64,000 bases of DNA from Botryllus schlosseri (Eukaryota): contig CM119379.1 of NCBI GenBank assembly GCA_051294905.1, positions 18,290,001 to 18,354,000 of the forward strand, given 5' to 3'. Positions 40,993 through 59,000 of the stretch are shown one piece after another. A model generated the notes under the pieces. That model saw nothing but the letters and a program-made list of their open reading frames with translations, was not told where the DNA came from and ran no database searches. Position 1 is the first letter of the stretch, and each line of letters starts with the position of its first letter. A program made the position numbers and the translations under genes.

Positions 40993-42621
40993 CTACATAG
41001 CCTATATGTGACTGGCCAGTGGCCAGTGTCTCTTGAGTCGCTCCGTATTAAACACAATATTATCATATGTTCTGCAGAACAGTTCATTCATGCATTCAGT
41101 GATAATGACACTGCTTAACCAGTGACACATCACACATGTCAACTTGCTTTAAAATTGAAGCGAAGAGACCGTAGGCTACGTCAAAGATCCATCGGTTTGT
41201 ACGATTTACACTGGAAATTGAAACAATCGGGTCAGTCACTGAGTTCATTGTATATAATTTAAAATATCAAGATTTCAAGTTGAGGTTGAACAAATATTTC
41301 TCAAAACAGAGTAAGGCATACTTAGCTACAAATGGAATTGCTCTCTTGAACACTCATAGCTTTATCTTTCCTTCTCTTGAAACAACGCAGTCACCTTTTT
41401 TCTCGCCGTCGAAAGCCTTTGCCTGGTTTGTTGATATCTGTATTTACGTTCGTCGTCACGCCAGTCAGCTGGGCGAATAAAACTCCCGGTCGAGAGATAC
41501 CGGAACGCCAGTCTCTACATGCTTTTGTTAGGAGCAGGAACGATTCGACGGTGAATTGCGTTATTGGACTAGGATATCGGTAAGTAAAATTACGATGCAA
41601 CTGTTGCAAATTGATTCAAGACTACCACTAGACCTGGGATTCGACGCTGTGACGGACTAAAATAGACTGGTATATTTCGCCAGTCGATCTCGTACGTTAG
41701 TGGTGTATTGGGAGAGATGTCAGATTCTATATTGGCGGTAGTTGACAGGCGCTCTAGAATACTAGCTATTAAGCAGTCTGTGAAATGTACCAAGTTATAT
41801 ATGCAACTTACTTGTATTCTGCACAAACCGCGAACCTTACGTAAATCTGAATGGTGCGAAATATTTCCGGCATTGTGAGGGGTCGAAGTTCAGCTCTTCC
41901 GTCGCTCAATATTCGTAAATTTTCGCGGTCACATCACCGTTCAGAGCATAGTAACGACCCTTGACTATAACATAAAGAATGTATTTATTTTATACGCAGC
42001 GTTGAATCCCTCGTGCTAGCTAATGTATTTAGCAAGTTCACTGGGACAAACTGGGTCTGCTCGAACAGGGTACTTGGGAACATAGTATGTCAAGACCGGC
42101 GTAGCGCGGTGGCTTCCAATGACGGTCGCGAGACAATCAAAGCTGTAAATCAAAGTAATGATCTGTCAATCAAATTTGCGAACTTCAAAGGCGATCGCTA
42201 TTTGAGTAAAACGCCCATTGTGTTGCTTTATGACGCTGGATTAATCTAAACATTCTATTTTGTAACAATGCAATGACTCTGAACTGTTTGGGTTCGAATT
42301 AGTACTTTGGTGTTCGGTGAAGTTGCCGGTCTATCATTTCCGAAAGTGAATGCATGACTGAATTTCAGGGATTGCATTACCTTTGAACATTACTATGGAT
42401 ATCATTTTCCCTCAAAAGGTATCAAGTCCCGGTTTATCGAGAGTAAACTCTTCGGTGCCTTACAAAAGTCATATGTCCGTGTGTTATTACCACAGATTCT
42501 GGGGGAAGATTTGCTGTTATCAAAGCTTCGCTCGCCGTTATCCGATATGTCATCGTCGAGACTGACACTACAGTTGCAGGAGCGATTCAAACAAAACTGC
42601 AACGCGTTTTACTCAAGGCCT

Positions 42622-45600
42622 ATGGTAAGATAAGGAGTAGTAACGTCTCTACGGCACTGTTATGTAACTATATACTCCTACCGGTACAGTGGCGTTGACT
42701 GCGTACCTGGGAGTATCGTCAGTATATTAACATGGTGTTTACTATTTGCTCAAGGCGTATGAGTCAGTAACTGAGTTTGCGCAAGCATTAAAATAGCGTT
42801 ACCGATTCCGTATGCTTCTTACACGGATACCATCTTGGACACGTTCTGAACGATAACCATCTGCATTTTACAACTTTTAGATTCCAAAAGAGGAGCTTTT
42901 TGATGACAGTTTGACGAATTTACAATGGTTGCAAAATCTCAACGTAAACATTGGCTGTCCGGTGCCGCCGATCCCATCCGGTGGCGTCGATTCCACTCGA
43001 ACGAATGGAGCTTGCCGGAGAATCCGGGGTAGCGGCGGTGTGCCGATTAACAGCAGACTGTCCAAACCGAAAAACTCGTCAAATAGTCCAAAAGACGCGA
43101 TTTGTAACAACGGCGAGCGGCGGAACGCTAAGTTGCAATCAAATTTATTGAACGGCAAATCAAAAGGACTGAAAAAACAGCCGCTTCCGCCTTTAATTCC
43201 ACAAAGTCGAACCCCTGTGCCAGGACAGTACCGATCACGGGTCGGTATGCCTAACAGGGACCCGCAGAAAGACTCCCTGCCGCGACTGAGCGGCAGCAAT
43301 GACAGCTTGAAGCTGAATACGAAACTCTGTGAAAACGCAATCATGCTGAACGCATCGCCTGAACTAGCCCTCCTGTCAGATGCCACGAACAATCAATACG
43401 TGCTGTCCCCCCGCCAAATGGACCTCGATTTGTTCCCGGGACAGGTGGACTACAAGAACAACCCTTACATAAAACCGCCTTATTCGCACCTGGCTTTGAT
43501 CTGCATGGCTTTGAGGCGAAGCAGGTCGGACAAAATGACAATTCAGAAAATCTGCGAGTGGATAAAGACCAACTTCAGCTACTACAGAGTGATCGGCTCT
43601 GATTGGCAGGTGCGATATTTTTACTCACCATATGCATGCATTTTACATCAATCTTGTTTCCAAGGGGTTTCTGTAAATAGTTATAATGAATCGGATACTG
43701 ACGTATGAGGTTGTCGGATACCTCCTGTTCGTTGAAATGTTAGCTGTCACATTGTTCATTTTGTTGGTCGTGTGTAGCCGCTGTCAACGATAAACTCTTA
43801 TCTCGTGAAAACAGTTTTATTCGCTATAAAATTTGACTATTAAACTAACAAAATAAATAGTCATTTCACCATGTAGTCAACCCTAAGAAGACCACAGAAA
43901 GCGGTTGTAACCAGTCGTTATTGCATGCCCAAGCACTTCCACGCCGCACAGGCAAGGCTAATTTTGCGCTGGTCTGAAATTGCGTCCCATAAACTCGATT
44001 CAACCCATTCATCGCTGCGGGAAACTGAGTTTAAGTTCTATAATCCCATTCTTTGCTTTTCATTCAAATTTTGTTCATCATTTCGCTAATAAAGTTTTCG
44101 CTGTCTCGCAACATCACAATATTCCGGCATTCTGTAAAAGACATGTAGGAAAGTGTATAACGACTAATTGCACTTAATTCGTGAGACGGTACCGGCCTCA
44201 GTGTTGTACAATATATCTAAAATATCAAAATTAGTCTCAAAACAGTCATACGCGGTCCACATCAAGCGAGGAAATACAGTGATGGTCACAAATACATATA
44301 TCAGCATTCTGGGAATATATTTTGTAATCGTTTAGTTCTAAAAGAATCCCGTAATAGCTTAACATAGGGTCATATCTATCACAATTTTAATGATCAGTTG
44401 AATGGTTTGCAAAGCCTTCCTCTGGAGGCAATCGTCAATGGATATATGGTCACCCGGCATCCCAAGCACCTGTATGGCTGTATACATAACTACAATAAAC
44501 TCTATTGTGCACCGGTGCCCACGTAATTCATACCTGTGTCATGATAAACTTCCGGTATGTGTAATGTAGCTCCCGGATTCGTTACTTTCTTTCGATTTAT
44601 CCGCAAGGATAACTCGCAAAGTCATAACGTCATATCTCGAATTGTCTTGATGTTTTGATTGGCTATTATGCGACGAGTTATAGCGTGTATGTGTTGTAAT
44701 CTTTTCTGATATTCATCTCGAGCCGCCGCTGCCACAAACATTCATTAATAGGAATTACGGCTATTGTCGCCAGGATATTTTTAGCGATCAAAGTCTTCCA
44801 CTGTATTATAGTCCGGCACTCCTGTTGGACTGTGGTCATTTGATCGTTCGCTCGGATTATTTTTTCCAGGGCAATCAAAGCAAGATTAGCATTGCCCTCC
44901 ATTATTTGTCTTTCGTGCTATTGCAAGTATGGCGTTTCGATTTAAAAATGAATGGTACTGTGATGAAATTTGCAATATTTAAGGTTCACCACATAATATT
45001 ACTGTTGTGACGAAGTTTGGAATCCAAAACAGCGATTTTTATGCGCGTATTTCGACTATCAAATTGTCTGTATTCTACCCTTTCGCTAGCCAGGTGGATA
45101 TAGGAGGTTCTTTGATTGTACCAGTACATCTGCCTTCAACACCGCAACCTAATGCGCATTTAGCTTCTGGTATACTCCTCTGATCCCCTGTAAAAACGTG
45201 TTGGCTGGCGCGCTTATACCTTTACCGTAATCATCCTGTGTAAACACGCAGTATATTATGTCTATATATAGTCGACGGCTTGTCAAATAATTTTATAAAA
45301 CAAGTACCAATGGTATGAATAGTTAGGACTCGACGCATGGGGTAACCGCAACGTTTGTCGGAACTTGGAAGCAAAAGGCCCAACCTCATCGTTGAGCACT
45401 TTCGGTAATATATTAATCTGTGTCAGCGAAGGAATGCGTCATCATCACATCCCAATTGGAATAATGTTCTTAATTGAGTGGAATTTTACAGGAATGTAGC
45501 CTTCGAAATGTGACGGCTATTTATATAGAGTAGGTTACGCGATGTCGAATCAGCTTATAAGACAAGATATAGTTGGGACGATTTTAAACGTTTGCGCCAT

Positions 45601-48600
45601 TGGCACTGTCGTCACGGCAGGCTTCTTCGCCCCGTAAGTGCGCGGCTTAAAACGACCGCCGACTTTACGGGACGCGCCTTCAGAAATACAATTCACTGGT
45701 CTGTATTTGACCTCTAAACAAACATTCGCGTCAAAGTAGGCTATTATTCCTTGCGACTTCGCGAATCGAATTTTTATAGGCCTTTATTGAAGTTAGTTGT
45801 TGAACGCTGTTCCTGCCGCTTTATCTACGGTTTTACGGCGTGCCCCGCGTGCGTGCAAGATTTCGGATGAATTCCACTTTCTCCCAAATCCGATCCAATT
45901 TCTTGTTAAGCTGAACCAACACTCTAATCACGACCAGTCGACTATGTAGAACGCATGCGCCTTATACTTCATATCTGTATTTGCGATTCTTATGCGAACC
46001 TGGTAGTGTGACTATTGGCCAGGGTAGGTATGATTTTTCAGATGATCAGTAACGAAGTACTTCTACTTAGTCTATTTCCATTTCCACTTGATCAGTTTTA
46101 AGGCAAAACTACTTGCTTTCTACAATTTTGACTTCCAAAATTATAAAGTAGTTTTGTCTTAAGTTTTGATCACTTACCACGCGAAATAGCCCGTGTATAT
46201 GTATAAGCATATGTCTGAAGATTGTATGTATTTCTAGTGTCGTGTTATTCGTTTTGCATTCGTCACTAAAATACATTTGCCATTCCGGAGTAGTCACCTT
46301 CGATCAACTGCTAAAATTAGACCACCATACGACCAAATCTACTTTTTCAAACTACCTTGAAGTAGTTTTGAGTGTTTCGGAAATAGCTGCAGCCTGCAGG
46401 TCTATAAATTTACGGCGTTACTCCTAGACTTGAGTAGCAACGCTGACTACTTTGACCATATTTGTGGTTTTGTAGAAATACAGTCGACACCGGTATACCC
46501 TTGTCCCTTTTAAGCTGGTTTCGTATATTGGTGTCCGGCCTGCTGCATATGTCCGAATGCTATTGTGAAATTAGATCTCTATACTTGTACAAACGGTATG
46601 TAACTCCTCAGCACGGGGTGCTAGCTGCGGACGTATCGAGTTGCAATACATAATTGTAAATGGCGTAATATGTCCTGGGCGGAATGCGATGCTGACCGGC
46701 GTGGTAGGGCGAAAGTGTCGGGTTGCAAGCTGTCTTTTGTGCCCTGCGCCATTGATAACAATGCAAGAATATGTTCTGCTACGTAAACCGGCGAAATCCC
46801 GTACCGAGACACCTTCGCATTCAGCCGCGAGAGCCATGAGGATGCTCACAACAATTGGCCGTTCTTACCGTGAAATGGATCCGTTGGAATTGTGAAGCCT
46901 CATCCTTGTAACATCAGCCTCGGTTATGCGATACCTTCACCCGTAAAGGGCACATTGTTCGGATTTGAAAAAAAGCCATCGGTATTGCGGATGGGGCCTG
47001 CGGCTTTAAATTGGAGCGAATCATAATCCATGAAAGGCGATTGCGCACAATGAAATCGGTCGGAAACAACTCGATGTCTGTAACAATTGTTCATTGTGTT
47101 GCGTGCGTCCATGAAGCTTGTCCCGTTTGTTTTGCTCGACCATCTTGAATTCCACGAGAGCCACTTGAAGCGCTGTGAGAGAGTTAACCGTTGGGTTTAC
47201 CAATAAAATAATACAGGCCACAATATCTGTACGCAGATGTGGGATTAATGCGTTTGCTCGCGAAAGCCGCTACACTTTGTAGCGACCGTTGTAACATTGT
47301 TGTATTATTAGCTTAATACCCATGCTTCGTGACTGTTTTCCGGCCTACTCAATAAGCTCAAGCCATGCTAGCCTGTTCCTAGTGTGTCATGGTTGCAATA
47401 CATCGATAACACTGTCAGATGGTCGGTAACGAATACTTTTACATAACCTGAAATCGCTATTTCTACTTGTACTTGAGTATATATTAGTGACGTTTCTTCT
47501 AGTTCAATTTGAATATCAAAAGCGACTTCTTTGACCATCTCTGTTCATAATACTGTCCCACAGAGTCGTTTTTAAACGTGTGACGAAAATGAAAAGCATA
47601 CTTTGTGAAATTATGGCAACGGGTTTTGCTGTAATCGATTCCCGGAAGATATCGCTGTTATTTCAGCGAAATCGGACTGAGAACACGGATATGTCCGTAA
47701 ATCCTAATTGTTGGGTTAGCGTTCGATTATACTGCACAGGGCTTTCTAGGATAGCTAAGCGCGTCATTATCGACGGGGCCGCATTCGTTTGAATAGCCCA
47801 TTGTGAACTCACAACAAAAGGTTTCAACACTTCTTATCAGCTGCGCTTACGCGGACAGTGTAGTTCCAGAACAAATCAAATTTGCCAGCTTATCGGGCGA
47901 TGCTTCGCTGAAAATGTTCCCTAATCGCTAAGCAAGGAACATAAAATGTCCGGATTGTCCGTCTTGTTAACACATTAACCCATGCGACATCATCTTAACA
48001 CCATTACTAGTTCTAGAAAATGTGTTCTCGCCAGTGTTTACCGAGGCTTCGGTGAGGTAATAAAGGTTATCAGTCGCCCGTATTGTTGCGGTTGGCAGAA
48101 GCGCTGACCGAAGCCAGCGCGATTTATGACGTTGGGTGTTGGTTTGGCGCAGACAAAAGAAGGGTTTGGTTTAACGCCGATTCCATCCCTCCGTGTATTG
48201 CTTCGTAGGCCAGACGGGACATGTCGCGATGAATGACACTAAAACACACAAACCTTACCTCTTTATTCCAATTAATTACAATAACAAATATTCCCTTGAT
48301 AAACAAAGGCGCAGCGTCGTCGCAATTTCGATTTCTGAACTGGGATTGCTAAGGACCGTTCAGAAGCCAGATTTAACGTGAGAGATATGATGTGCGCATG
48401 AGACAAATTACTAAATCATGTGTTGCTCGCGTTATTGCATGTTTACGGGTTTGTATACTGTATAAGTTACAGTCGCGATTCGTACACCATGTGGTTAGGA
48501 CACTATTCCCGGAATATTCACCATTACAGTTATCCATATCAGTTTGATTCCACAAACTTATGTTATAGCGCGTTATTATATTAGCCCTGTTTTAAAGCAT

Positions 48601-51028
48601 TGGAGATATTATCGTGCGGCTCAAATGCTCGATTTCGTTTATTGCTACTCGTTGTATTTACGGATCGTGACAAATAGCGTCCGTAATAAGCAAAGGGCTA
48701 GGCATAGATTGATAGAATCACGCTGATACTAAAATAGGTTGTAAAGCAACTTATCCGGCAGCCTGTTTGTGTAAGTCGTTGGGAAATCCGCACAGTAGCC
48801 GACACCAGCCCATTCTCTTACAGAACTCAGTCCGCGACAACCTGGCGCGTCACAAATGCTTCGAACGGGTCGGGAGAAGTGCCGGAAAGGCCGCTTTTTG
48901 GCGGATTCACCCGAAATACGAGGAAAAGCTGTCGGAAGACGTGCTTCGGAAACGGCGACTCGCGTCCGCCGGCGAAGACAAGGGACAGCCTTCCACGGTC
49001 GCAGGTACGGTAACTCGATAGACTTGGGCCCGATATGAATAATAAACTCATATCTATTTGAACAATTTTTGGCGAAACCACTTACTTTTCCCAATTTGGA
49101 TTTGAAAAAGTGGAAAGCAGTTTGGGGATTACTTTGCATCAATTTTATGACTAAAACTGTCGTAACAACTAGTCGAAATAGTCCCACTCCTGTAACGGTA
49201 GGGTTACCACATTTCAAGATTCGAAAAAGACGAAAAAATATAACTGGTTATTTAAAAAAATTTCGACCAATAGTACTGTGTTGACTAAAAAAAGGTCATC
49301 TTTCACATATCAACTCCCAAAATACCAGTCAAATTCCAAGAAAAGGGGACATTTAGTCGTCCTCCGGGGACACTTCCAATTTAATGAAAAATGAGGACAT
49401 ATGGTAACCCTAGGTAACGGACTATATTACGTTTGCAGTGTCATCAGTTATTTTGTATTACTCTCCAAGGTACATGTTGCATTTTTGAAATTTGCCGCCC
49501 CGATTAGGCCTACCCGCCAAAAGCATGCGACATCCGGCCTAATCTACTTTATGAAACTGAGTAGTTGAGTACTTTTCAGCCCTTTCATACTTACACTTGA
49601 AGTAGGTTACTTTTGACATGTCTCGGATTCGCTACTTCTGCTTGTAATTGAGTTGAAATTTACGACGTTAACTGTTCTGCTACGCGAGCAGCAGCGGTCA
49701 CTGCTTGGACCACCTCTGTTCATCAGCATTGCATTACTGTCGAGGCTAATTTACAAATCCATATTGTTTGAACAATTGAATTCCACTCTTGATTTGATCT
49801 CAATTTCTCGTTTCATCCCTTGAGATAACATGACGAACCTTTTCCAGACAAGTCCTCCGCCCGTACGTGCAGTCCCGCCATCGAGCCCGTCAGCGACTAC
49901 GACTTCCTGCGCCCGGAAGACTTCGACCCGGACGACGACTTTCTCGACAACGAAAAGTTCACGAACGCCAAGAAAACCTCGTCCGCCGGCAGCTCGTCTT
50001 CCAACAACGGCTCGGCCGGTCAAAAACGCAAACAGGCCACCCCACACCGCAGGCCAGGCAACAAAAAAAGCAAGCGAGTCGTGAACCACCCGTCTCACCG
50101 CGCGCCCAATCCGAACCCCCTAGCCGACCAGGCGCCGGAACTGGGCTCACTAAAGGGCGAGTTTAACTTCGTGAACATCTTAGAAGATCTGCGAGTCCAC
50201 GGCAGCTTAGGCGGAAGTTCTGTGAACTCGTCTTTGTCCTTACCTGCTACCCCAGTGTTAGCGCCTAACAGGAACAGACACCTAAACCCACACCAGGCCA
50301 GCAATCCGGGGGTATCCGCTCCTGTGACCTCATCATTGGCCTCCGCAAGTGAGAGCATGCTCACAGACGTGATGCTGCCCATAGACCCGAGCCTCATGAT
50401 AAACAGAAGTAGCGGTGGAGCTATCATACCGGAGCTGTGCGGAGAGAATTTACCTCCGGAGTTGGACGCGGAAAACCGGGACATTCTAGAAGAGTTTCTG
50501 AACGCGGACAAGCTGACTAGGTCTTCCCTCGAATCACTGGGGCGGCGGCGTGGCGCTAGCTTGAACACCCCCACTTTCGAGCTTGAGACTAACGAGGAGG
50601 AGATATCCAAAAGCGTGGAAGCTTTGGACCTCACAGTGCGCGGGAACAAGATCGAAAAGCCGGCGCATTGGAACCCGGAAGACTCCCTGGATTTGTTACT
50701 GGGCGAGCAGGTAGACCACGTGACTTTAGACGAAAATGATCTGGGCGTGGGTGCGCTTGATTTTCTGGAACACTGGGGTATTCAAGATGGGGTCGCGGAC
50801 GAGAATTCGCCTCGTGGTAGTAAGAAAAGCGGCCGGAGGCGACCTGGTTCGGGATCTTCAAACCGCGCGTCTCCGAGACAGTACACGCCCACGAATCATC
50901 TCTCCCTGACCCCGCAGCTTCAAAATCAGTTGAGGAACAGTTCACTGTCGTCCTCGTCCGGATTGTGGCAAGAGGCGAGGTTTGCGGCCGATACGATACA
51001 GTCGATTCTGGGCGACGATTTCGAATGA
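42622..51028 (+). CDS. FOXJ1: Forkhead box J1-like transcription factor (~697 aa) with a divergent recognition helix
   Basis: Exons: 42622-42624 (ATG only, tentative), 42881-43609, 48824-49004, 49848-51028; total 2094 nt, in frame. FoxJ1 hallmarks: DDSLTNLQWL, DYKNNPYIKPPYS, KRKQ, DLTVRG. Forkhead domain ...WQ|NSVRDNLARHKCF...GKAAFWRI. Confidence 0.82.
49199..49412. mobile_element. Short hAT-type MITE (TAGGGTTACC family) in a FoxJ1 intron
   Basis: TIR tagggttacca...tggtaacccta; 8-bp TSD tgtaacgg/ggtaacgg (7/8). Confidence 0.8.
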
Positions 51029-53073: not shown

Positions 53074-56000
53074 ATGGCAAGTAAGGTTGTTGTTTATTGA
53101 AAGAAAAATTTGGCGGATATCACCTTTTGGTCTTTTGCACCACGGTCAATAATGGCGAACGGAATGGAGAGAATACATAATGTTCTGAGAGGAAAATACG
53201 GTAAATAATGGCGTAAAACGGCATTTCAGCACCGCGAAAAAATATCAAGGCTAAAAAAGGGAAAATTTCAGCACGGCTGGAAAATAAAGCAGTCACGGCT
53301 ATTCACAAATGATGGTAACAGGATTACACGAATTTAATGGAAATGGGGCATCTTTTTCATCCGTGAGGAGACTTCTAAGGCAAAAATTTGGCAAGTAAGG
53401 TGATAGCCTTCTGAAAATACCATCTGGACGTCAACTGCTCGAATATCTTTCACCGAATTTTCTATCATAATTTTTGCAATAACTTTAAAATGTGGATTGC
53501 ACGTAGAATTGTAGAGACTAGCAATGGCACCGTTAATGTCGTTGAATTTTCGAGTCCTTTAAGAGAATTATTTGCGTTCTCAGTTCACAGACATCGACTA
53601 CTGCATAAGTAATAATTAGCCTATATTCATGATTTCGATTTGAAATAAATCCCGGGGAAATCAGCTCACGCAAACATAACTGATTGCAACTCCTACAGCA
53701 GGCTTCTTGTTTGACTGCGATCACGATTGCAGCCAGTAATTTATTGTAAACATGCATTTCAAGTGTATATTTGTTGCGACGATTTTCATTGTCTCAATAT
53801 TTGCTCTATTAGCGGAGGTATAGGCTAAGTGCACATCTGCTGATACGATCAATCGCTCTATCAACCACACAGCCACGCGAAACTGCATGTGCTTGTGTAC
53901 TACGAGGATAGATTTTACGGGATTACAATCGTTCAATATGTCACTTACAAGCTTGAAGGTATTCCAAGTTATCAAGATGCTAGAGATGCAATTCAATACT
54001 TTTTGATTCTACAGGTCCTTTTGTGGGTCGTCGTAGTGACAGACTTCGTAAACAGCTCGCCCCTTGACGACTACGTCCAACATGACGATGGCTTTTTCAA
54101 CTATGAGATACTTAGGGACCAAACGTACGTCTCCCCGGAAGTAACAACATACGTGCTGAATATGACTTCGCAGAAATGGTTAACTGGTAGGCTCCTCATA
54201 TTGCGTACAAAATGTTTGACATATCCATAATATATGTACCAGTACCGTATTATGAATAACCGTATGGCATTTCACATTATACCAAGAGCAAGAGCTATGA
54301 CTTCTTGTCTTATCTGTCTAATCTACAATGAAATCCGAAATATTTAACGCCGACAGAGAAGGAAGTGTCAAGATCGATATGGTGGCATTATTTGGTGATT
54401 CATGTTCCGAATGAGATCGACCCAGATTTGAAAAAATCTGCATTTTTGTTCGTCGATGGGGATGAAAACAAACCCGAGCCTCCGAAACCCGACGATATAT
54501 TTGTGGAGCTATTCAGACTCGTTGCAGTATCGGCAAAAACGTGAGAACATATATTTCCTGCTTCGTGGTATGCTTCGCGAATTTGTTGGTATATTTGAGA
54601 AGGTTTATTCTAATTGATAAAACCGATATAATTGAGCATCGTACCAAACACGGCAATCTATTATATATGCTGAGATGAAATATGGTTTTGTTGCGTTTGT
54701 GTTATTCGACTGTACCGCAGCAAATAGCGAAAATACTTGCTCAATGTGCATGATATAGGAAGCATCAATGCCGTATCCGTATGCTTTACACATCCCGCTC
54801 TCTAGTGATCAAAACTATTTTTAGGGTTACGGCGGTGTTAAAGAATATTCCAAATAATCGGATTGTATTCGCAGCCGATCCGGAACACAAAGCTCTTTCT
54901 GATATGGACATTCTGGCGTTTGGTTGGAAGTAAGTTATTAGCACACTGTCAGCAAGAGAAGCATGTAAAATTCTAGTCATAGGCTACATAGCCTATATTT
55001 AATAACCCTGTGATACAGAATTTGAATGTTGCAACGAACAATGCATTCATATCGATATATTTATTCATATAAACTCTTTTCAACTGAATCTCATCGGGAG
55101 CGACCATCATTAAATGCATATAGCCTAAACCCTTAGCGAAAAGAGTGTGCATTCACACCCAATTTGTGGTATACGAAAACAGCACCTAACTTAGAATTAT
55201 ATCGCGGTTATAAATCCGTCGTGCCTAAGTCCATGCGTACAAGCGTCTTTTGGATTAAAATTTTGTGTTTGAATTGTACCGTGGTGTAAGTCTGAGGCAG
55301 GTCTTGTCTGGTATACTCGGGGGTGCATATTCACACCTATATATCACGGGTGGTACACGGGTGTCAATACACACTCTTTTACTGTATATCCAACTATTTG
55401 TACTATTGTACTATTTCGGATGGTTTGCAGATTTTTAATTGATTTCATTCGCTGCTAGATTGTTCATCGAGAATCCAAATAAAACGGAATACATTCCGCT
55501 GCTTCCAATGGCGAAATCTGGAGTAAAAGCGATGGATGCAGTTACCGGTTTTGCAAGCAAGTTTCTGGATTTGGAGATCAATGATTTCTGTGTATCTGGC
55601 GCATCAAAAGTAAATATTATGCAGGACTTTCGACTATGACTCTGCGCATGTACTGTACCTTCAGACGGTGACGCTAAAGTTATTTTCTACAGCGCGGTTG
55701 GGCAGCCTGGTTGACGGTGGCAGCAGAGTACAAAAATCGGGTAAAATGCTTGACACCTGTTGTCTATGACTACTTGAATATGAATAAGGTGAGACGGTTG
55801 AATAATTGTATTTGATGGTGTAAGGCTTTACAAATCACTGCGTTTGAAAATACGCAGAATTTCCACCACCATTATCGGGCATACGGCGGTTGGTCATTTG
55901 CAATGAACAGCTTTTGGAAGTACAATCTAACAGGAAGGCTGGATGACGAAGAAACGTTAAGAATGATGGAAATCGTTGACCCGCTGAGTAGGTATTTTGC

Positions 56001-59000
56001 CAGATCTATACACCAATACCAACTATATTTCTAGTGTTGGCATGACTCGAGTCAACTTTTTCGTATGACTTGACTTGACTCGAGTCACTTTGCAAAAATG
56101 ACTTGACTTGACTCGGCGCTTTAGAAATGTGGATTGACTCGTGACTCGGAGCAAAATTTACGAGTCAATTTCAAGTCAATAATCAAACGGTGTCGATTAA
56201 ATCATCCTATCTTATGTATGTTCGGGTTGTTCGATATACGGCGGCGTCACTTGTGAGAGCAACCAGTCATTCACTGATTGTACGTTTCACTGATCCTACA
56301 TTGTTACATCACAAAAAAATTGACCGCAAACGAAACTATCACAGCTTACTTTGTCGTAGTAGAAGTAGAATATTTTACTAGCAACGTATCTTTGTTTCTT
56401 AGACGGCTCTGTGCTTACATTGCGCAGTGCTCACCTTTACCGACACTCTATTACAGTGGTTCCCAACGTGGGCGATTTGGCGGTCTAGGGGGGCGAAAAT
56501 GACGAAGGGGGCGACAGGGGGGCGAAAATGGACAAAGGGGGCGACGGGGGGCGAAAATAGCGAAGGGGGCGATAGGGGGGCGATGACGCGTCAAAACGGC
56601 TGACCTTTTTTTTTTTTTTTTTTTAGTCAACCCACGCAAAATTTAGTTACAAAAATGTGAAAAAGTGTGTCAAATCAGACATCGAGCCGAAAATTTGCCT
56701 TTTTTTTTTTTAGTCAACCCGCCGGTGATTGCAATTTGTATGCCCAATTTTCGGTACACAAAATTTGGGGGGCGATGATCGGTGTTGACCTTGAAAAGGG
56801 GGCGATGGGTCGAAAAAGGTTGGGAACCACTGCTCTATTAGTATGATTTAAATCGATCGAATATAGTTTATGCGTTTATATTCTCACGGATGTGTATAGA
56901 TGGGTGGCGTATTGTACCACATCAATTTGTTCAACTTCTCGAGGCTCTGTATTCGATCCTCTATATTCGATCCTCTATATTGGCTGACAATAACATACTG
57001 TAGCATGTAGCTATACAGTTACTCACGTATTATATTACCAGTTACACGTGTGGGTGAGCGATACAACACCTTTTTGCATGTATATTTAACTTTATATTCG
57101 TTATTTGATTCAAGATAAATGGCCAATTAATCTGTTCTTCACCCAGTTAACAAAATGTAATCACTTTGCATCATAACTCATACTTCGACAATTCAATTTT
57201 ACTTGAATCTTTACTTGACTCGTGACTTGACTCGACTTGACTCGAGTCACCTCCAAAAACGAGTGACTTGACTGGACTCGAGTCACCTTTGAAAATCCAT
57301 TGACTTGACTTGACTCGAGTCAAAATGTGCAATGACCCGAGATGACTCGTGACTCGAAGGTGGTGACTTGATCCCAACACTGTATATCTCAACGTCGAAA
57401 TTATATAGGGGATATGAAATTCCGTTTGTCCGTGTTAATTTGTTTGATATTTGCATAGTAGCATATAGGCTTTTCGCATACGCAATTAATTCCGACTTGC
57501 GAGAGTTTTGGTTTCTGAGAAAGATATTTTCTGATTTTTGGGTGTAAATCGAGTAGCCTAAGTTTGGACCGACGTAAACATTTTGTTTGCATATTTCAAC
57601 ACGAAAAAACCGGCAATTGGGTGCTTTTCATACAGTAGACCAAATTTACTTATTCACTCAGAACCGGTAGGTCTATCATTCAATTTGGAGTACATTGTAC
57701 TTATACAGCATGCATATACAATACAGTGCATGCACTGTGCACATTTCAATGAAAAAACGAAACTGAGAATGACCAATAATTAATCATGATGAAAGTCCTG
57801 AAAAGTTTAAATCGCAGCCCAGAGTAATTTGGGTTTACGTAGCCTAGTCATATAGCTGCAATGAGGTAGACTTCGACAATGCGATATCCATATAATCATT
57901 GCAATTTTGCGATCACCACCATACTATCTCATTCTATCAGCGTATAAAGATCGGTTAACGATGCCAAAAATGATGACGAGCTCAACCGGGGACGAATATT
58001 TCCTTCTTGACGACTCACACTACTATTTGAACCAGATGGAAGGACCAACATATGTCAACATGCTGCCAAATACTGAGCACACCATGGTCGGTCATGAGTT
58101 TCAATTGGCTGCGAACCTCGAGGTCTTTTACTTGCATGCAATGAAAGTAAGGTGTTCAACTGTTCAACTTACCACATCAGAGCTTATTACGAACTATTTG
58201 TATGTTTTTATTTTCAGAATTTAAAAATGCCGAAATTATCATGGAATTTCGGAAGTACAGCTACAGGCGGTGTTATCGAAGTGATCACTGATACTAAACC
58301 CACTCTGATCCGTGCGTGGCACGCCACTACACCAAATAACACAATGTAAATATATCATCATTTGGGTAGCCTATAAAGATATCAGTTTCGAGGATATCGG
58401 AACTAGAAGTTTATTTCAGGCGAGATTTTCGACTTCTAATCGCCAATCCCAGTAACCCAACGAAATCCTTATTTCGCCCACTGCTTTGGGAGTCGGCTGA
58501 TGTAACCAAGACAACTGATAACACGTACAGTTTCGAGATGGATTCCCCGAATAAAGGATGGGCTGCATTTTTTATACAAGTGAGTAAGATAAATTAAACT
58601 TACGCCTAACTGTTTGTAGTTTCGAGAAGCGAGAAGAAAAAAGCCTATAGATTATGTAGTCGCTTCCAGGCCACGGTGCTGTACGCTAATTATTGGTGAT
58701 ATGATAACTAGAGCAAGTGTTTGCAACTTTTGCAACATTTTTTACAGCTTCCCAGATACTCAGAATCTATGTTCTATGATGTTTTAAGCTGTTTGAAGTG
58801 ATTTTATAGTGCAACTTTTCTCTATTTTTCACACCAACTTTTACTGCAACTTTTATCAAATATAGCGTAAAAATGCAAAGGAGTGATTTAAAAACATGCC
58901 ATAAACTATTTCTAGTCTGGTTCTATTCTCTTTGATTTGCATAACAAAGAGCTCTATGATGGGACAGCTGCATCTCACTGTTATCAATGACACAATGGCT

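Follow-up and report, generated by a model that had tools for sequence, protein, structure and literature searches.

FoxJ1 is the conserved master regulator of motile cilia, and conservation across animals is very strong for both this factor and the forkhead recognition helix. In the ascidian Botryllus schlosseri, a FoxJ1 gene lies on the plus strand of a 64,000-nucleotide stretch of contig CM119379.1 (assembly GCA_051294905.1, positions 18,290,001 to 18,354,000; hereafter the window, whose own coordinates are used throughout), and its recognition helix 3 reads NSVRDNLARHKCF, where canonical FoxJ1 has NSIRHNLSLNKCF. Is this an error or a decaying copy, an ordinary FoxJ1 in spite of its helix, or a FoxJ1 that reads DNA in another way? 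The sequence comparisons described here indicate a lineage-wide, constrained remodeling of the recognition helix in a gene that is FoxJ1 by descent and whose Styela and Clavelina orthologs are not annotated as FoxJ1. No description of a remodeled ascidian FoxJ1 helix was found in the searched literature on ascidian and tunicate FoxJ1, including that on Ciona, Botryllus, and Styela, although many subscription papers fall outside the coverage of that search.

The gene comprises four coding exons (42547-42624, 42881-43609, 48824-49004, and 49848-51028) that encode 722 residues in an intact frame, and its introns are GT-AG in every case. The first coding exon (42547-42624, 26 residues beginning MSSSRL) has its ATG at 42547 and a GT donor at 42625. 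It aligns with the N termini of the Styela clava ortholog P0002 and of the stolidobranch transcript P0161, and RNA contigs reach at least 194 to 234 nucleotides upstream of exon B. Exon B (42881-43609, 243 residues, phase 0) encodes the FoxJ1-family N-terminal signature DDSLTNLQWLQ (42902-42934, residues 34 to 44), a linker, and the first half of the forkhead domain (43472-43609, residues 224 to 269 of a domain that spans residues 224 to 314), from helix 1, KPPYSHLALI, through helix 2 to GSDWQ. The domain is split between WQ and NS by an intron of 5214 bp (43610-48823, GT..AG). Exon C (48824-49004, 60 residues plus 1 nucleotide, phase 1) opens with NSVRDNLARHKCFERVGRSAGKAAFWRIHP at 48824, right after the AG, and contains helix 3 (48824-48862, residues 270 to 282), a shortened wing 1, and a basic LRKRR patch. 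Exon D (49848-51028) encodes the C-terminal ~393 residues, with the motifs KRKQATP, LGSLKGEF, LDLTVRG, and LWQE, and ends with the stop codon at 51026-51028. An earlier note, made from the letters of the window, had described an intact open reading frame of ~697 residues. The intactness stands, while the single frame is replaced by the four-exon coding sequence, in which exons B to D without the 26-residue first exon account for the 697.

Four positions of helix 3 depart from the canonical sequence: His is replaced by Asp274 (codon GAC, 48836-48838), Ser by Ala277 (codon GCG, 48845-48847), Leu by Arg278, and Asn by His279. Of the N-x-x-R-H-x-x-S contact set, Asn270 and Arg273 are thus kept and the His and Ser are gone; the domain also retains Lys280 (the Lys of KCF) and the Trp of the wing, together with the LRKRR patch. 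The helix substitutions called by the earlier note are real, and its description of helix 1 (SHLALI) and of a short wing 1 was accurate, the latter being three residues shorter in the alignment than in Styela and canonical FoxJ1. A second helix-3-like exon that could be used by alternative splicing was not found within the 64-kb window.

The correctness of these letters was assessed with RNA-derived contigs of the same species, from three studies (runs X5, X2, and X10), aligned to positions 43200-49150. The junction 43609|48824, with its GT..AG ends, is present in contigs of all three runs. Exon B depth in the RNA contigs was 35/8/41, and intron depth was 0 to ~11 per bin. Beyond 49004, the X2 and X10 contigs read ACAAGTCCTCC..., which equals the window sequence at 49848 and therefore fixes the acceptor of exon D. 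Because the whole genome (495.5 Mb) has a single copy of exon B, the contigs represent spliced transcripts and not a retrocopy. None of the contigs lists a difference at 48836-48847, the region of Asp274 and Ala277, which settles the sequencing-error check proposed in the earlier note; for the X2 contig over exon C, 7 other letters were reported and 4 places listed, none of them at 48836-48847. The coding polymorphisms that were found (43238, 48866, 48874, 48929, 48937, and 48970, five of them in exon C) are all synonymous (6/6). A decaying pseudogene, or odd codons produced by assembly or sequencing error, would fit the lower Pfam scores of tunicate FoxJ1 domains (87-94 bits against 128.5 bits for canonical FoxJ1). 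Against such an origin stand the intact 722-residue frame, the canonical splice sites, the spliced transcripts in three studies, the agreement at the Asp and Ala codons, the synonymous polymorphisms, and the same helix in three other species, and we consider it very improbable. The Botryllus FoxJ1 helix is neither an assembly slip nor the relic of a pseudogene, and the gene is spliced and transcribed in bulk RNA.

A further run, X23, gave 13 raw RNA reads, all partly aligned, which match the window up to 43448 and continue with 29 nucleotides (TTTCTTCATGTTACGCACCACTCGAGCAA) that occur neither in the window nor anywhere else in the genome. These reads add no support, and their loose end may stem from a divergent strain or a library artifact.

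Is the gene a FoxJ1? Against Pfam Forkhead (PF00250; cutoff, 27 bits), the exon B half scores 44.6 bits (profile positions 2-48) and the exon C half 32.2 bits (positions 49-87), both above the cutoff; the tunicate ortholog scores cited above cover profile positions 2-87. Outside the domain, DDSLTNLQWLQ aligns with DDSLTSLQWLQ or DDSLTSLSWLQ of bat, shark, amphioxus, and annelid FoxJ1, and a DDSLT-type N-terminal signature was found in most of the FoxJ1 representatives returned. The domain entry VDYKNNPYIKPPYS and the C-terminal motifs of exon D align with FoxJ1 of the same animals, as expected from the earlier note, which had placed the gene in the FoxJ1 class by motifs outside the domain. An exhaustive HMMER search that used exon B as the query yielded proteins of the FoxJ1 type, and the best nontunicate matches carry the FoxJ1 name (Branchiostoma FoxJ1 and vertebrate FOXJ1, J1-A, and J1-B). 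The nearest named ortholog is Styela clava XP_039272091 (LOC120346425; 728 residues, 77% identical over exon B), labeled "uncharacterized protein," followed by Clavelina lepadiformis XP_076801422 (LOC143445910; 706 residues), which its source also does not name FoxJ1; both, at ~706-728 residues, have the architecture of the Botryllus protein. In the forkhead-domain tree the tunicate sequences form one group (support 93/90) on the FoxJ1 side, with the remaining Fox genes of the genome all lying apart from it. The WQ|NS point that closes Botryllus exon B is also where FoxJ1 exon fragments from many animals stop; this intron position is not discriminating by itself because FoxJ2/3 has it too.

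Compared with amphioxus (P0013, Branchiostoma) and mammalian (P0181) FoxJ1, the Botryllus protein has in common the forkhead domain, DDSLT(S/N)LQWLQ, the VDYK-NP-KPP(Y/F)S entry, the WQ|NS intron, and the C-terminal motifs KRKQ..P, LGSLKG(D/E)F, LDLT..G, and PW(Q/E)E. It differs in helix 3, in a Tyr-to-His change in helix 1, in IC(E)WI for IY(K)WI, in a shorter wing 1 that lacks the PGKGG run, in being ~300 residues longer, and in a Pfam score ~35-40 bits lower. The motifs at both ends, the intron position, the best matches, and the tree all indicate that the gene is FoxJ1 by descent. It is not a biochemically canonical FoxJ1 by these same sequences, because its helix 3 departs from the near-invariant NSIRHNLSLNKCF.

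Whether a canonical FoxJ1 exists beside this one bears directly on its role. Whole-genome scans with PF00250, exon B of Botryllus FoxJ1, and amphioxus FoxJ1 as queries found no canonical or second FoxJ1. Candidates for a canonical paralog on C4, C13, C12, and C14 proved to be FoxJ2/3 (C4), FoxG (C13), two FoxO genes (C12), and FoxP (C14), and four further half-domain matches (two on C13, one each on C1 and C15) belong to an unrelated, divergent forkhead-like family. By these scans, FoxJ1 is single copy in the genome of B. schlosseri, a stolidobranch close to Styela. Searches in Styela and Clavelina likewise recovered the divergent form as the only FoxJ1. The earlier note had suggested that the gene might be a dominant-negative FoxJ1 that antagonizes a canonical one. 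The altered helix, and nothing more, speaks for such a role, which is unsupported because the genome has no canonical FoxJ1 partner to be antagonized, and we regard it as highly improbable. Among the other Fox genes of the genome, intact forkhead domains score 105-141 Pfam bits, and the genes with helix 3 read keep NS(I/V)RH(N/S)L, with NAVRHNL in FoxP. Because these helices stay canonical, the change is specific to FoxJ1 and does not reflect a general drift of tunicate forkheads.

The helix change is not private to the Botryllus copy. Helix 3 reads NSIRDNLVRHKCF in both Styela clava and P0161 and NSIRDNLARHKCF in P0162, the latter two being stolidobranch transcripts from intron-free RNA contigs; all three keep R-D-N-L-(A/V)-R-H-K-C-F, as Botryllus does. 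Among these stolidobranchs the RDNLA whose conservation the earlier note wanted checked is kept as RDNL(A/V). Across these four stolidobranch species helix 3 is identical at 11 of 13 residues, including the Asp, Arg, and His. A second noncanonical helix, in which Leu or Val stands for His, was found in Clavelina (NSVKLCLTQSKHF) and in two Clavelina-like contigs, L051 (DSVKVNLTQSKYF) and L052 (NSVKLNLNQSKFF). In this clade Arg is also changed to Lys, and Clavelina FoxJ1 further differs from that of Botryllus in having no basic wing-2 patch. The helix-3 His is therefore missing, in two forms, from all seven tunicate or tunicate-like orthologs recovered (7/7), and a Tyr-to-Cys change in IY(K)WI is common to the same seven. 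No Ciona or other named phlebobranch ortholog came up when the Styela and Clavelina proteins were used in word-indexed searches, a result that says nothing on absence.

NSIRHNLSLNKCF is the helix 3 of nearly every other full-length FoxJ1 representative returned; P0072, P0089, and P0134 depart from it at His. A set of 71 "canonical" FoxJ1 sequences also shows 100% helix-3 conservation, by construction, because the set was picked by that motif. P0072 and P0089 appear by sequence to be vertebrate-type FoxJ1 copies, with Cys or Tyr for the helix-3 His and N-terminal extensions unrelated to FoxJ1; they may be misjoined or decaying copies.

The remodeled domain is constrained. Against P0162, which forms the closest pair with Botryllus, the nonsynonymous substitution rate (dN) rises from 0.066 in the forkhead domain to 0.166 in the N-terminal part and 0.238 in the C-terminal part; saturation has been reached at synonymous sites against both P0162 and P0161 (proportion about 0.9). 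The forkhead domain is, by this measure, the slowest-evolving region of the protein, and the sequences indicate that the gene is under purifying selection. The stolidobranchs sit in the tree at the end of branches of 0.24 and 0.44 substitutions per site, and their terminal branches measure 0.02-0.07. This pattern of a long tunicate stem followed by short branches points to a burst of change and then stasis. A decaying domain is excluded by the lowest dN in the forkhead, the burst-then-stasis branches, and the exclusively synonymous polymorphisms. The earlier note had allowed for a gene without expression and under relaxed selection, an outcome that the spliced transcripts and the purifying selection remove.

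An AlphaFold2 model was made of P0162:205-325, the closest full-length ortholog, whose domain is 90% identical. The model forms a winged helix with block-mean predicted local distance difference test (pLDDT) values of at least 90 over helices 1-3. Structurally it comes closest to DNA-bound FOXK1, FOXC2, FOXN1, FOXN3, FOXG1, and FOXA, and Foldseek matches to the FOXK1, FOXC2, and FOXN1 DNA complexes gave template modeling (TM) scores of 0.81-0.92 normalized to the target. The winged-helix fold (H1-S1-H2-H3-S2-wing-S3) is thus predicted to be kept in the P0162 domain. In the crystal structure of FOXC2, helix-3 Asn118, Arg121, His122, and Ser125 contact the major groove, with His122 hydrogen bonding to two thymines and Ser125 binding the phosphate backbone; the substitutions S125L and K132E strongly lower DNA binding (PMC6468292). 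Both His and Ser had been taken as base contacts in the earlier note, which by the FOXC2 structure is right for His and wrong for Ser.

One possibility is that the substitutions are nearly neutral, so that a forkhead-type site is still read through Asn270, Arg273, and the backbone by what is otherwise an ordinary FoxJ1. The retained fold and the many retained contact residues are in keeping with this, and forkheads can use alternative contact patterns, as FOXC2 does on GTACACA (PMC6468292). Yet every other Fox gene of the genome with helix 3 read has the His, as do nearly all of the returned FoxJ1 representatives (save the three named above), four helix-3 positions changed together on a long stem branch, and replacement of the same His by Arg in FOXO1 (H215R) abolishes binding (PMC10626282). 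We therefore consider it improbable that the remodeled helix reads DNA as before. FOXO1 H215R, the standard DNA-binding-deficient mutant, still induces or regulates some genes (PMC10626282). It resembles Botryllus FoxJ1 in the residue replaced and differs in being an engineered replacement by Arg, with no further change, in a Fox protein of a different class, whereas the Botryllus change is natural, to Asp, accompanied by three further helix changes, and conserved.

The reading that we favor, to which we give about an even chance, is that the Botryllus gene encodes a working FoxJ1 whose recognition of DNA has changed. Following its rapid change on the tunicate stem branch, the forkhead domain would have settled in a new constrained state in which it still binds DNA and reads it in another way. 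With a spacing of one helical turn (i, i+4), Asp274 and Arg278 could pair, in which case the charge of the Asp would be masked and a guanidinium group placed where His contacted the thymines. An Arg at the former place of His would give the domain a preferred site other than RYAAAYA. FoxJ1 would then probably still drive the motile-cilia program together with RFX factors, by way of its conserved N- and C-terminal motifs. For tunicates at large we hold, somewhat more tentatively and with the chances a little short of even, that the His that contacts bases was lost from their only FoxJ1 on the stem, and that the protein now either reads a new motif (the stolidobranch Asp-Arg helix) or reads no bases (the Clavelina-type helix).

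Forkheads with altered site preference exist. FoxN1/N4, FoxN3, and FoxH1 read noncanonical sites with the canonical helix-3 Asn, Arg, and His intact; tunicate FoxJ1, unlike these, alters the helix itself. The FoxN and FoxH1 proteins serve as precedents for forkheads that read sites other than RYAAAYA (PMC7062188, PMC9701222).

Several points weigh against a functional FoxJ1 with new DNA recognition. Binding might simply be weakened by an acidic residue where the central base contact is normally made, and the proposed pairing of Asp274 with Arg278 derives from helix geometry only. The Clavelina-like Leu/Val helix without a basic wing-2 patch fits a loss of base reading as well as it fits re-specification. 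The structure model is of the ortholog P0162 and not of Botryllus FoxJ1 itself. Because synonymous divergence (dS) is saturated, selection is expressed as dN by region and not as a dN/dS value. Finally, the tree split that unites the tunicate sequences with the FoxJ1 references has 74% bootstrap support (Shimodaira-Hasegawa-like approximate likelihood ratio test [SH-aLRT], 97), and long branches meet there.

The strongest competitor, which we judge less likely though well worth weighing, is that DNA reading has been largely given up. FoxJ1 would then be a cofactor brought to cilia promoters by RFX or other factors, and its domain would serve nonspecific contacts with DNA or chromatin or contacts with proteins. 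The helix-3 His has given way to Asp in Botryllus and to Leu or Val in the second tunicate clade, where Arg has also become Lys and the basic wing-2 patch is missing. These changes are consistent with this proposal, and the Clavelina-type helix with its missing patch suits it better. In Xenopus, Rfx2 stabilizes Foxj1 at promoters, rather than Foxj1's own sites doing so (PMC5245798), and some genes can be induced by FOXO1 H215R even though it does not bind DNA (PMC10626282). The Botryllus genome has RFX DNA-binding domains, and the FoxJ1 motifs outside the forkhead are conserved. However, the forkhead is the most constrained region in stolidobranchs, and solved FOX complexes show DNA contacts at the positions of the retained Asn, Arg, Lys of KCF, Trp, and LRKRR. 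Fixation of the new Asp, Arg, and His in the helix suggests a specific new surface and so counts against a cofactor that no longer reads DNA.

In either case, a chordate lineage rich in motile cilia appears to have a single, constrained FoxJ1 in which the central base-contacting residue is replaced. This would be a natural case of a master regulator that changes its DNA specificity, or its dependence on reading DNA, while keeping its program. It would also be informative about the share of FoxJ1 function that needs the factor's own motif as opposed to RFX partners, and about which helix-3 residues set forkhead specificity. If tunicate FoxJ1 indeed reads a new motif or no bases, the cilia gene network would have been rewired around a changed master regulator.

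The scans also returned forkhead sequences of other kinds. The four divergent half-domain matches (L041, C13:16489030-16489167; L042, C13:16653410-16653547; L043, C1:8405138-8405278; L044, C15:4284398-4284535) are very divergent forkhead-like first halves that score 26-31 Pfam bits and end at profile position 47-48 (for example, KPPLPYDVIIFLAMEI... and KPPVTYDILIYLAF...). Their second half was not identified, and they may form a lineage-specific family. A FoxG-type gene (L020/L025, C13:6012464-6013605) apparently has introns inside the forkhead domain, with pieces at profile positions 1-43 and 24-75 and a third piece. Several Fox genes are duplicated locally: two FoxO-type copies 33 kb apart (L046/L047, C12:10225179 and 10258196), two near-identical FoxD-type genes 75 kb apart (L002/L004, C12:25.12 and 25.19 Mb), and three related Fox genes inside 35 kb (L001/L003/L010, C6:22.24-22.28 Mb). 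The exon B query matched six separate stretches of P0003, a protein of 774 residues with repeated forkhead-like first halves (PPFTYIELIAQAL..., IPFSFESMAELAI...), an unusual multi-forkhead architecture.

Two further features of the window were recorded. Within the large FoxJ1 intron, ~30 bp at 46428-46458 are touched by many unrelated contigs with differing loose ends and are probably a short dispersed repeat. Downstream of FoxJ1, a multi-exon gene on the plus strand (53844-58594) encodes a member of the PhoPQ-activated pathogenicity-related family (PF10142), and its exon pieces cover profile positions 1-39, 40-96, 207-257, and 255-316.

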